A stretch of DNA of 64,000 nucleotides from Macrostomum lignano (GCA_002269645.1 NIVC01001986.1:19177-83176); one strand, 5' to 3'; positions 40,601 to 49,600 are shown, counted from the stretch's first letter. The notes: generated from the letters alone by a model not told the origin. Translations and numbers: made by a program.

Positions 40601-43600
40601 AATTCGTTTTTGGACAAAAATCTGGAACAAACACTTCAAAGTTTATCACCTTTTAACCTAACTGTCCGTTAAAAGAAAATATGTTATAATAGATGAATTC
40701 CTATTTTATTTCAATTTTTCCTTCCTAATTGTTTTAATTACATTGACAAAAAAAACTATTTTTAGTTATAATAATGCGCACAATTTTCATAGCTTTCTAA
40801 TCTTACTATAAACTAACTTTGTTCCCGTAAATTGATGGAATATAATCCATTTAAATTTTCATTGCTTGTACTTTAAGCAGTGCTTCTAGCGGAGAAAAAT
40901 TTTCAAAGAGTAGAAATAGCTAGCCAAAATAAACCCACTGAATATACACATGTAGATGGCTAAATAAATTTCTACTTGGTAGTTTTTCGGTATAGACTTC
41001 ATAAAAACGCTTAAGAGCTTTAATAATAGCTGACTATATGCTTACTATACTATAGTCACGTATGTGTTTTTCCTGAGATAGCTAGCATTCTACAAACTAG
41101 ACATTGCATTTCTACGATATTAGTTTACTGATGACAGAATCTTCCTACTTATAACTATACATTCATATACTTACTGTTTTTGCTTTTATAATAAATGGTC
41201 ATTGAAAAACTATGATACATGCATGTACGCTCGCCAGCACCAGATTTTGGTGCGCAACTAAGTTAAATTACGGATGCGCGGGTTAGTCGATCGCTAGACC
41301 AAAGGCCTGTCTCCTTCTCAAAGCCCATCTGTCTGATTGTCTCAGCTCAAATCGTCTTTCTCGTCTCTATATCTGGTCCTTCTCCATCCAGTTTGATTTA
41401 TATACCTTGATATAAAATTCTTACTAACTCTACTAGCCAGTTTGATTTACGAGTAATCGTGCAGTAGCTCAGTAGCTATTGATTAATCAATTTCGTTTGA
41501 CCAAACCCTGCTTATTAGCCCAAATGATCATTTTTTGTTAATAAACTTTTTGCTATATTTAAACGATAACTTAGATTAACGAGTAGTGGCATAGTGTAAT
41601 TATCTATATTATCCACGTTATATAACTAAATATTGCACGCAAATTTATTTAATTAGTATAATAATGTACTATAGTTAAATTATTAGTCCAGTGCTTGCAG
41701 CATCAGAGCGATTTTATAAAATCAAGCAGCTAATATACGCGATCAAAATTTTATCGCAGATACATGTCTACTCGTAGTCTATGAATTTTTTTGGCATCAA
41801 TCAATTTCATAGTCTATGTTTGAAGTCTATATAGTACTGCGTGCCTGTTCTGTCTTTGTCTTGTTTTTCTTCTTCGCAGCTATTGCTCACTTTCTTCCTT
41901 TAGCTATAGAAATTTGCTTGCAGGCATTTCAACTTTCTACGTCCTTGCTTGTCTTACTTGCCGATTTTTTTAGCCAAATTTCAAGGCTTTATTTTTATAG
42001 ATTCAAGAACAGAATAGTAGCTAATCAATATTTAATTAAAATAGTTTTTATAATAAACAAAAGCTATCGTTCTAAAAGAAGCCAATAGCGCCGCCATGGA
42101 CTCAGTCGAAGCTACAGTCGAGCAGCCCAAACGTCACGATGCCGAGTTTGTTGCAGCCGCTTGCGACTTTCTTGGACCGCTTAGTGGAGACGATACAACT
42201 GCGGGTAATTAACTCCTAGTTGAAATACAATTAATGAAAGTATAAAAAGGCATACAATATTGCCTTATTTATTGCCCTTAGCAGCTGTGGTATTAATTCA
42301 AAGATAAACACCATCCCGTTTTTTGCCCATCCCTAACCACGCTGATGGTTCAAAGATAACCACCACCCCGTTTATTGCCCATCCCCAACCACGCTGATGG
42401 TTCAAAGATAACCACCACCCCATTTTTGCCCATCCCCAGCCACGCTGATGGTTCAAAGATAACCAACACCCCGTTTTATTGCACTTCCCTAGCCACGCTG
42501 ATAGTTTAAAGATAACCACCACCCCATTTTTGCCCATCCCCAGCCACGCTGATGGTTCAAAGATAACCACCACCCCGTTTTATTGCACTTCCCTAGCCAC
42601 GCTGATAGTTTAAAGATAACCACCACCCCATTTTTGCCCATCCCCAGCCACGCTGATGGTTCAAAGATAACCACCACCCCGTTTTATTGCACTTCCCTAG
42701 CCACGCTGATAGTTTAAAGATAACCACCACCCCATTTTTGCCCATCCCCAGCCACGCTGATGGTTCAAAGATAACCACCACCCCGTTTTATTGCACTTCC
42801 CTAGCCACGCTGATAGTTTAAAGATAACCACCACCCCATTTTTGCCCATCCCCAGCCACGCTGATGGTTCAAAGATAACCACCACCCCGTTTTATTGCAC
42901 TTCCCTAGCCACGCTGATAGTTTAAAGATAACCACCACCCCATTTTTGCCCATCCCCAGCCACGCTGATGGTTCAAAGATAATCCTCACCCCGTTTTATT
43001 GCCCACCCCAACCACGCTGATGGTTCAAAGATAACCACCACCCCGTTTTATTGCACTTCCCTAGCCACGCTGATAGTTTAAAGATAACCACCACCCCATT
43101 TTTGCCCATCCCCAGCCACGCTGATGGTTCAAAGATAACCATCACCCCGTTTTATTGCCCTTCCCTAGTCACGCTGATGCTTCAAAGATAATCACCAACC
43201 GCTTTTATTGCGCTTACCATCCGCGCTAAAGAATCAAAGATAACCACACTTATTTATTTCCCTTCCCCAGCGCGCTTTGAAAGAATCAAAGACAACCATT
43301 TCATTTTTTGCCCCTTCGCATCCACCAATGAATCAAAGATAAGCAACCCTTTTCTTCCTTCCCTGGACCAATGATTCCTGTCCCCAATTCATTTCCTTGA
43401 TTTGGAATTTTGGTTGAAAGATCGTGTAAGAGATCTAGTTATTTGTTAAACCTATTTAACTCTTCTTGAAACAACAGATAACCCCGTAAAGGAGGCGGGC
43501 GCCACAGCTGCAAAGAAGGCCCCGCCGTGCATAGAATCTTCATCATCCGACGAAAATGACAATGAGGACAACAACCAAGGAAACGACGATGCCGCTAACG

Positions 43601-46600: not shown

Positions 46601-49600
46601 CATCCGTATCTTTGAGTTCGCGTGAAATAGAGTGTAGAAAATCGGCCATAAAATTTTGTAATTACATGAGAACTGTGGGAAAATACACATATACAAAGTA
46701 ATTGTTTCAAAATAGAACTAAACATTTGTAAATCCTATTGGGGCCAATTAGCTCGTCCTAAAGCACTAAATAGTTTTCTCTCCCTCATCGTTCTTGACAG
46801 CGGCTGCTACAATGCAAGGCTCCGCAGCGGTTGCAGTCGACGATAAGGCTAGCAACGACAGCCAGTTGCTGCCAGAAGATCACGCTGTCCCATCGGAACC
46901 AGCTCGCAATTTTGTTGACGACTGTCTAATTTATGAGCCGGAATTCCGGCCGGACAGAAACTGCGCCAGATTCTACGATTGGTTCGACGGCATCGACTTT
47001 GAGAAGCTCTATTGCAAAACGCTAGACCTGCCCTGGCAACCAACCAAGATAGTTTCCTATCAGGCTAAACCAGACGAGGAATATCCGCTCAGCCTGATTC
47101 TGGACGACAAACCGGTGCCTCCGGAGCTGCAGCCGTTCACGCATCTGTTCTGATAGCGCTGTAGCCCACTACGGCCTGAGCATAGCTGAAAAATCATAGT
47201 TATAAGATAAGCTATATATGCAAAAATAGCATAAACTACGTTAGCAAAGAACTAAATTTAGCTAGGACAAATTCATTTATCTAAACGTATTTCTCTCTGC
47301 CTACTCAACCTGTATTGTTTTAATTTTTAAAAACTAAAAGCATTAGCTAAACAATAACGCATACTCAGAAGTTTTCTTTGCCGCGATGCTGCAAGCATAT
47401 TAGGACAAAAAATCAAATTTTCAGTTTCGTTTCAAAAAGTCTTAACTAGCGATGCAGGGCATTTTTTGTTGAAATAAAAACAAGAATTAATAAAAATAAT
47501 TACAGGTAATTATAGGTCGTAGGAAAACTATCAACATTTTTTTTGTTTTCATCTCCTTCCTTTTAGTTGAAGCTTAATTGTATATGCTGCACTAAGCCTA
47601 CAATTTCGTAATGGTTCCTTACTAAAAATCTTACTAACAGGAAAGAGTTTATGTATTAAAAATGGATATGCTAATCTAGTGTCGCACCGCACAGTAGCTA
47701 GCTGCATATCTAAAAAACTCAACTGGATCAATTGCTTGCTGTCAGTAGCTGTAGGTTCCTTACTATACTAAAAGACGCAGTAAGATTTGTTTGAGAATAA
47801 CTTTTCTCAACGAAAAAAAGCTTTTTTTGACAGCAAAGTTCTGAAGGTATAGTTTCGACAAGGACTACTGCTGCAGTACGAGTAACCGGACAAGTTTGCA
47901 GCTTTCCTGTGTGCACCCTAAAAAGTTATGGTCTGGATATATTTGTGGTGGCTGGATAACTACTGCAAGTAACAATGCCATTCAGCTTCATCATCGTCCC
48001 CTTAGAATAAAAAATAAACAAAAAAATTTGTGTTCTCCAATTTGTGTCGCCTATTTTACGCTTTACGGAAACCTGCAGTACTTAAATAGTAGTGTGTTTG
48101 CTTATGGATGGAAAACAATATTCACACCTGGTTGTATTTGAATTTAAATTTAAGTTAAAGAACTTGCTTGATTCGGTACAATCACTTTTGTGTCCCTATA
48201 TGCTTACGTTTGGTGTCTGTATATTCCTAAGAGCTATTCTGCAAGTCAATTCAATACGATAAAGCTTTAATAAAGCTGTCGATAGTTACATATTAGTTCG
48301 AAAAAATGAGGTAGCTAAATACGTAGAGGTATAATTAAATAGGCATGAACAGTTAAAAAACATTTAAAAATTTTTAATTGTTCAAATTGTAAAAATTGCT
48401 AAAATTTTTAACCGCTTTTATTAGTATGAATTGGCTGGCATAATGGACTATTTGCTGAAAGCGTGTGGCCCAGTAGCATGCTAATATATATTAATTTACG
48501 AGTAGAGAGGTGAAGTGGAGAAAATTTTAATTATAGATGTTCTCACATTTTTTCGTTATACCATTATTGACCTATTGGCCAACAAGCATCAGCTGAATAA
48601 TTGTAGCAAAACCTTTGTTGGCCAAAGCCTGATTTTTGAAAACCGCACGCTATATGGAATGGATCTATTAATGTTAAAATTATTAGTAAATGAGCCGACT
48701 CAATCTCCAGATCTGTCTTATCTCCTATCACCGCTCTCGCTCTCGCTCTCTTTTTCACCGCCGACGCCCAGGGGAGTTACCTGCTAACACCGACATTGAT
48801 GAAGGGTTGGAAAAGCTTTGAAATAGACGCCCAGACTCAGCGTTCGACGTTAATATCACAGCGATCCACGGGCGGCCCGGGTAGTGGCAGCGGCGGCGGC
48901 CTCAGCTCCGGTGGAATGCCGCAAAGAACTCGCAGCGTTGATGCCAGAAATCTTCCAAGCAGTAGTGGAAGCAATCAACAGTTGCAGCAACAGCAGCAGC
49001 AACAGCAACAACAACAGTTGTCATTGATGCAGCAGCTACCAATTCAGCAACAACAGCAGCAGCAGCAACAGCAAGCTCATAAGCACCGACCGTCGATTTG
49101 CAACGACAACAACGTGCTGCTAAACGCGGAGACTCTGTCTGACGAGCGGACCCAGGCTCTGATGCTTGCTGTTCTGGTAAGGTTTTTTTGTTCTGGCTTT
49201 GGGAATGTTAAGTTGCCCCATTACGGTTTAGTTGTATGACTAGCGCGTGTAGCCCCTTCGGGGGCTGGTCAAGATATAAAAAGTTGATTCGATCTGTGCT
49301 GTGGATTCGATGCTTTAAAAAGCAGCAAGGTGTATATGATTCCTTTCTAATACTCGTCCTCTTTCACTACAGGTAACAATGGTTCGCAATACTACGGACG
49401 AGAACGAGTCAAGAATCCTTTATGAATATCTGGCCGAAGCAAGCGTTGTCTTTCCAAAAGTATTCCCTGTTATGTAAGTCTATTTTTTAATAACTATGTC
49501 GCAGAATTAAATTTTCGATTAAACTGTACCTCAAAGTACATGCACAGTTCTTCTTTTTCAGCCATTCCTTAATCGACGCCAAGATTAACTACGTTCTGGC

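Follow-up and report, generated by a model that had tools for sequence, protein, structure and literature searches.

Human NF1 carries three nested genes for unrelated membrane proteins, OMG, EVI2A and EVI2B, which lie antisense to their host in intron 27b, where the region coding for Sec14-PH is located. Across human nested genes in general, approximately 63% are antisense to their hosts, so that about 37% lie in the sense orientation (PMC3192792). In the same-strand nests of metazoans, a complete multi-exon guest sits in one intron of its host in the same orientation, the host is transcribed through the guest, and transcriptional interference or competition in RNA processing is possible. We describe a likewise organized nest in Macrostomum lignano, in a stretch of 64,000 nucleotides (GCA_002269645.1, NIVC01001986.1:19177-83176; hereafter the window, to which positions refer unless a contig is named). 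In this window, a gene for a PKA-related protein kinase lies on the + strand inside a single intron of NF1, the gene for neurofibromin. In our view it is probably a nested same-strand gene of an ordinary kind that is transcribed independently, with its own promoter and poly(A) signals, and is read through by NF1 transcription.

The kinase gene occupies positions 42096-47153 of the + strand and consists of six exons separated by five introns, all of them GT..AG, which join into an open frame of 1557 nt encoding 518 aa. Exon 1 (42096..42204; 109 nt) opens with the start codon at GCCGCCATGG, 39 nt downstream of an in-frame stop, encodes a poorly conserved N-terminus and ends in phase 1. Exon 2 (43478..43849) encodes an acidic, disordered N-terminal region followed by a PKA-like A-helix (residues 111-128), and exon 3 (43945..44264) encodes the N-lobe with a degenerate Gly-rich loop (RKGHHA), the beta3 Lys and the alphaC Glu. 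The catalytic loop and the activation and P+1 loops are contributed by exon 4 (45693..45921) and the C-lobe by exon 5 (46018..46191). Exon 6 (46801..47153) carries an insert of low complexity, the conserved Arg of the C-lobe (R451) and a putative C-tail of AGC/PKA type that ends in FTHLF directly before the stop codon (47151-47153). These coordinates exactly reproduce those of an earlier note on this DNA, which had described an intact, six-exon kinase gene nested on the same strand inside NF1. Pfam Pkinase was detected in the product at residues 158-453 (E=2.6e-36).

The protein itself is already public. It is identical at 517 of 518 positions to UniProt A0A1I8H298 of M. lignano, the difference being K125 versus E, and it falls into one 90% cluster with NCBI PAA47700.1, 'hypothetical protein BOX15_Mlig014081g2'. 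The gene for PAA47700.1 sits on contig NIVC01004360.1 (L005), which is the same locus as the window in assembly GCA_002269645.1 (96-99.8% identity) and begins at window position 38504. The Mlig annotation was built from RNA-seq transcripts, and its 'transcriptional units' were split into g1, g2 and so on at spliced-leader (SL) and poly(A) evidence (PMC5730564); the six-exon model is thus transcript-derived rather than ab initio. The identifiers Mlig014081, Mlig023784, Mlig007458 and Mlig009949 do not occur in the supplements of PMC5816591 and PMC5730564.

Open reading frame (ORF) segments of neurofibromin extend along the + strand from ~5280 to ~51480. A tblastn search of the window with human NF1 returned 27 collinear blocks covering residues 21-2699; the query was an approximate sequence that served as a probe only. 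In a search of PDB, the exons that flank the kinase matched residues 2357-2469 and 2581-2750 of the solved human neurofibromin structure (7pgp numbering; E=6.6e-86), and the annotated product of the paralogous NF1 described below contains RasGAP, CRAL_TRIO_2 and PH_NF1 domains. By these alignments, the host is neurofibromin, collinear with human NF1 over the RasGAP, Sec14/PH and C-terminal domains. The intron that holds the kinase falls in a poorly conserved, disordered linker, at about residues 2470-2580 of the human neurofibromin C-terminal region.

The boundaries of this intron depend on a small exon. NF1 exon 38369..38472 (+), which aligns to human neurofibromin at ~2423-2456 and whose protein is 80% identical to that of the paralog exon (L001/L002), ends at the donor GAAAC|GTGAGT in phase 1. 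A direct join from 38472 to the NF1 exon at 48772, which begins in phase 0, was rejected; it is out of frame and meets a stop. A predicted exon of 173 nt at 39203..39375 (+), ending in ...QQQQQASQ, turns phase 1 into phase 0 and is the last NF1 exon 5' of the kinase. Its counterpart on paralogous contig L001 (7168-7481) has identical phases and contains MVVESNSTESVSE (pairwise E=2e-6), the motif common to both being MV(I/V)ESNS(N/T)(D/E)S(L/V)SE. Because this exon restores the frame and is conserved in the paralog, we place the host intron at 39376-48771 on the + strand (9.4 kb, phase 0), and NF1 is predicted to splice from 39375 to 48772. The first NF1 exon 3' of the kinase (48772..49176, +) contains poly-Q, and the next two (49373-49473 and 49562-49748, +) encode protein 92-94% identical to the paralog at saturated synonymous sites.

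The entire kinase coding sequence is thus contained in one NF1 intron, with NF1 exons on both sides that end at 39375, resume at 48772 and run on the same strand, as the earlier note had stated. Its numbering of the host as intron 28 is plausible, given that ~28-29 coding blocks precede it; the limits of the intron are refined here. In the remainder of the intron (38.5-42.1 kb and 47.15-48.8 kb), only short ORFs without signals were found on either strand.

A second M. lignano NF1 locus is found on three contigs, L001 (622 kb), L002 (306 kb) and L006 (128 kb). There, a kinase paralog with 59% identity (PAA68955/PAA85016/PAA60631) is flanked by the same NF1 exons, arranged in the same order, and has the same six-exon structure (115/279/320/232/180/359 nt), with a first intron likewise in phase 1. 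Between the window and this locus the exons alone can be aligned, at 68-83% nucleotide identity, and the proportion of synonymous differences (pS) is ~0.7 for both NF1 and the kinase, which amounts to saturation of synonymous sites. This pattern fits an old event in which NF1 and the kinase were duplicated together as a single block. The collinearity of the two loci stops directly after NF1. At the paralogous loci, the gene 3' of NF1 encodes EST1_DNA_bind and PIN_4 domains and is SMG6-like (L001 20600-25884); no counterpart was found at 51500-64000 of the window, within 12 kb downstream of NF1.

The paralogous locus also bears on the view that the arrangement is spurious, either because a mis-assembly put the kinase between two halves of NF1 or because the kinase is a decaying pseudogene. 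A mis-assembly could be suspected from L005, the GCA_002269645.1 contig of the locus, which starts at 38504 and leaves the upstream NF1 exons to a different contig. However, the same nesting recurs on the three long contigs of the paralogous locus, and an assembly artefact, which the earlier note had named as a ground for refuting its claim, is therefore excluded. Decay is contradicted by intact frames, by a ratio of nonsynonymous to synonymous substitution rates (dN/dS) of ~0.1 at saturated dS, and by homolog contigs that are probably spliced transcripts. Taken together, an artefact or a dead gene has a negligible chance of being the explanation.

The substitution ratios were resolved further by region. 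Over the kinase domain and tail, dN/dS was 0.13 between the window and the paralog and 0.09 between the window and a 72%-identical homolog, while the N-terminal 95 residues gave 0.5-0.6, which is nearly free evolution. For the NF1 exons 3' of the kinase, the proportion of nonsynonymous differences (pN) between the window and the paralog was 0.034 against a pS of 0.73 (dN/dS ~0.01). These values indicate that both copies of both genes are under purifying selection, which is very strong on the NF1 exons 3' of the kinase. The low pN relative to pS suggests that the NF1 exons downstream of the kinase are translated, and their translation would in turn require, indirectly, that NF1 be spliced across the kinase gene. 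The 72%-identical homolog was recovered as two intronless contigs from SRA runs SRR30276804 and SRR30276812, which are most simply read as spliced mRNAs of another Macrostomum.

By sequence, the kinase is closest to PKA catalytic subunits, which were the best matches of a phmmer search of PDB (E=5e-24; RSK2 next at 1.5e-21) at an identity of ~27-34%. An AlphaFold2 model had a mean predicted local distance difference test (pLDDT) of 75, with a core above 90, a disordered segment at residues 1-100 and an insert at ~365-430 of low confidence. When this model was searched with Foldseek, the top 50 PDB matches were all PKA-C, over ~390-420 columns and with target-normalised template modelling (TM) scores of 0.64-0.81 (mostly 0.74-0.81), although this fold match was partly to be expected, given that the AlphaFold2 input alignment held PKA sequences. 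In the predicted model, helix 111-128 takes the position of the PKA A-helix, and the C-tail is also part of the match. The tail (...PFTHLF here, YQHLF and FRHLL in the paralogs) aligns with PKA tails and is predicted at a pLDDT of ~85-97; Pfam Pkinase_C was not detected in the product even at E up to 10.

With PKA-C the nested kinase shares an N-terminal A-helix with its Trp, a bilobal core, the beta3 Lys, the alphaC Glu, HRD, the Asn and Asp metal ligands, APE, the equivalents of R280 and E230, and a C-tail with an apparent FxxF-COOH end. It differs from PKA-C in several hallmark motifs. The Gly-rich loop GxGxxG is replaced by RKGHHA (RxGxxA) in all three family members. The catalytic loop has HRDIQASN where PKA-C has RDLKPEN (K168 to Q, E170 to S), and HRDVQSAN also occurs in the family. 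DFG has become DFA, and the P+1 loop GTPEY has become CFRYY. Every family member shares the replacements at K168 and E170, DFA, S at T197, C-F at G200-T201 and T at E127. The protein departs further from PKA-C by insertions that follow beta3 and separate alphaG from alphaH, and by an acidic, disordered N-terminus of 100 aa. Sequence and predicted fold together thus indicate that the protein descends from the branch of AGC kinases to which PKA catalytic subunits belong, in keeping with the label 'PKA-like' that the gene had been given, but the altered motifs set the protein apart from an orthodox PKA. A search of 1.84 billion representatives yielded no specific relatives outside Macrostomum, and the other strong matches in it were generic or multi-domain kinases. 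We regard the protein as an atypical kinase or a pseudokinase that derives from PKA and is restricted to this lineage, its catalytic status being read from its motifs, because the whole family is altered in the Gly-rich loop, at the Lys and Glu of the catalytic loop, at the glycine of DFG and in the P+1 loop. Two UniProt entries named 'Serine/threonine-protein kinase greatwall' (A0A1I8J276 and A0A1I8JQ42) were considered and set aside; they represent the kinase paralog in truncated or mis-spliced form and are not greatwall kinases.

We next consider how such a gene would be expressed. Transcription of the kinase would begin at its own promoter in the NF1 intron. TATATAG at 41828..41834 (+), 262 nt 5' of the ATG, is a candidate core promoter, and the same heptamer lies 72 nt 5' of the paralog ATG on L001; TATAAT at 42049..42054 (+), 42 nt 5' of the ATG, is a possible alternative TATA element. 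Translation would start at an ATG in a strong context. The 3' end of the mRNA would be formed at the gene's own poly(A) signals ~330 nt past the stop, for which two AATAAA at 47473 and 47489 (47473..47494, +), 320 and 336 nt after the kinase stop, are candidates. The start context and the AATAAA had both been pointed out before, and both were located again. No AATAAA occurs within the 5-kb kinase gene, against a window average of ~1 per kb. For NF1, polymerase would read through the kinase, and the entire kinase gene would be removed with the NF1 intron.

The geometry does require, as had been proposed, that NF1 transcripts read through the kinase. Two further remarks of the earlier note went too far. 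Same-strand nesting is hardly rare, given the share of human nested genes that are sense (PMC3192792), and the passage of NF1 transcripts through a poly(A) site is unremarkable, for NF1 pre-mRNA crosses about one AATAAA per kb in any case.

Some observations tell against an independent transcription unit inside a spliced NF1. The TATA-like motifs lie in AT-rich sequence, where they could occur by chance. No annotated M. lignano protein holds the NF1 exons around or 3' of the kinase, and a 385-aa query spanning the nest matched NF1 of other animals only and no Macrostomum protein. Finally, the 'g2' in Mlig014081.g2 marks a gene cut from a multi-gene transcriptional unit, which leaves room for co-transcription with NF1. 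On the second of these points, because no annotated protein contains the C-terminal NF1 exons at all, we consider NF1 to be under-annotated in M. lignano. In public annotation, the 2131-aa NF1 model of the paralog stops several kb short of additional NF1 exons that are well conserved; conserved NF1 exon regions at the paralogous loci are found at L002 1-1020 and at L001/L002 3700-6900 and 17700-20600.

Co-transcription is the most serious competitor, although we judge it a good deal less likely than transcription from the gene's own promoter. The kinase mRNA would then be released from the NF1 primary transcript by SL trans-splicing 5' of the ATG together with intronic polyadenylation, and each primary transcript would yield either NF1 or the kinase, making their output coupled and mutually exclusive. 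Beside its designation as g2 of unit Mlig014081, possible acceptors can be cited in its favor. The trans-splice acceptor motif of M. lignano is [T/C]TNCAG (PMC8629364), and a single copy, TTGCAG at 41918, is present within 400 nt 5' of the kinase ATG, at a distance of 173 nt; with a strong polypyrimidine+CAG at ~41879, the candidates lie 173-217 nt 5' of the ATG. There is, however, no [T/C]TNCAG close to the ATG, the homolog transcript contigs have a 5' untranslated region of at least 176 nt that bears no SL remnant, and TATA-like motifs are present 5' of both paralogs. No SL sequence was found in the window or in the homolog contigs.

Intron phases raise one other alternative, an isoform in which an NF1 exon is spliced to kinase exon 2, so that neurofibromin would end in a kinase-like domain. 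Phase 1 is found both at the NF1 donor at 38472 and at kinase intron 1, which would keep a junction from 38472 to 43478 in frame, and the phases at the paralog are alike. This agreement has a one-in-three probability by chance, and the nearest NF1 exon, 39203-39375, ends in the incompatible phase 0, so that the fusion could form only if that exon were skipped. Moreover, kinase exon 1 is conserved in length and has a strong start context, the annotated protein is a stand-alone one of 518 aa, and the database searched held no NF1-kinase fusion protein. We therefore think a fusion isoform very improbable.

An independently transcribed nested gene thus remains our preferred explanation. The earlier note had gone further and suggested that a PKA-like gene inside NF1 might form a coupled or mutually exclusive regulatory unit with its host, citing the links of NF1 to cAMP/PKA signalling and a KRRxS site kept in this NF1. 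The site is indeed kept: an NF1 exon at ~18.3 kb encodes KRRHS, aligned to human KRRMS within residues 772-853. In the kinase, of the three acidic residues that bind substrate Arg, two are lost (E127 to T and E170 to S) and only E230 is kept, and the RRxS specificity of PKA appears to be absent. Because the kinase has lost the P-3/P-2 arginine-binding residues E127 and E170, a link between it and the NF1 KRRxS site is without sequence support. It is doubtful that the nest is a selectively maintained regulatory unit in which kinase output is tied mechanically to NF1 transcription and the two genes are reciprocal. The tie could consist in SL trans-splicing or intronic polyadenylation competing with NF1 splicing, or in transcriptional interference, and the Ras/cAMP pathway, which NF1 controls, might be a target of the kinase or be scaffolded by it; regulatory coupling between PKA and NF1 nevertheless finds no support in the sequence and is speculation.

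Several other features of the window were recorded. Tandem arrays with units of 13, 22, 27, 104 and 163 bp occupy much of the NF1 and kinase introns. Kinase intron 1 is filled by a 104-bp repeat in 8.8 copies (42300..43215), and intron 3 holds a 27-bp repeat in 33 copies (44687..45561); the other long arrays are at 36000-36838, 37278-38235 and 38592-39159, and examples of further NF1 intron arrays are at 2.4-3.2 kb, 5.8-6.3 kb, 13.3-15.3 kb and 26.4-28.1 kb. Array copy number differs between the window and contig L005. L005 also lacks ~910 bp at window 39670-40580, a partly G-rich segment without an ORF or Rfam match, which is either an insertion/deletion polymorphism or an assembly difference within the host intron. 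An Rfam scan of the entire window gave no match at the gathering score. In the first NF1 exon after the nest, long poly-Gln runs are present at 48940-49075, where the paralog has poly-Pro/Ala instead (L001 18270-18345), and low-complexity sequence in the NF1 linker therefore seems to turn over rapidly. On the minus strand at 63314-64000, an Ala/Pro-rich open frame of at least 229 aa runs past the end of the window and may be the start or end of a neighboring gene.

The kinase has been in public databases under the name of hypothetical protein. New here are its location within NF1, missed by public annotation, the finding that the nest has been kept at both NF1 paralogs, and an account of the motif changes. 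If the relation between the two genes is merely positional, this is one more sense-oriented nested gene, and its practical value lies in annotation: public NF1 models of M. lignano end before the nest, the kinase is called a 'hypothetical protein', and fragments of its paralog are called 'greatwall'. If the outputs of NF1 and the kinase are reciprocal, M. lignano could become a model in which to study how one stretch of chromatin is shared by a host gene and its sense-strand guest. The species is suited to such work, being tractable to transgenesis and having SL, 5'-end and poly(A) libraries. The kinase family, conserved and with an unusual set of catalytic-motif changes, is in addition a reasonable candidate for the study of pseudokinases.

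Against the SL trans-spliced operons of M. lignano, the locus is alike in that the kinase has a same-strand neighbor in one annotated transcriptional unit ('g2'), and unlike in that it lies inside an intron of that neighbor rather than downstream of it, with no SL acceptor motif adjoining its ATG. SL trans-splicing gives M. lignano an additional candidate expression route for a nested kinase. Human NF1 resembles this locus in holding genes within an intron, but the M. lignano guest is in the sense orientation, occupies the C-terminal linker intron and encodes a kinase. It is, as the earlier note had held and as established knowledge of human NF1 confirms, unrelated to OMG, EVI2A and EVI2B and located in a different intron, and the nestings in human and M. 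lignano NF1 are independent events. Among same-strand nests, this one differs from the others in having NF1 as its host and a lineage-specific, PKA-derived kinase as its guest, and in being kept at two paralogous loci that diverged anciently.

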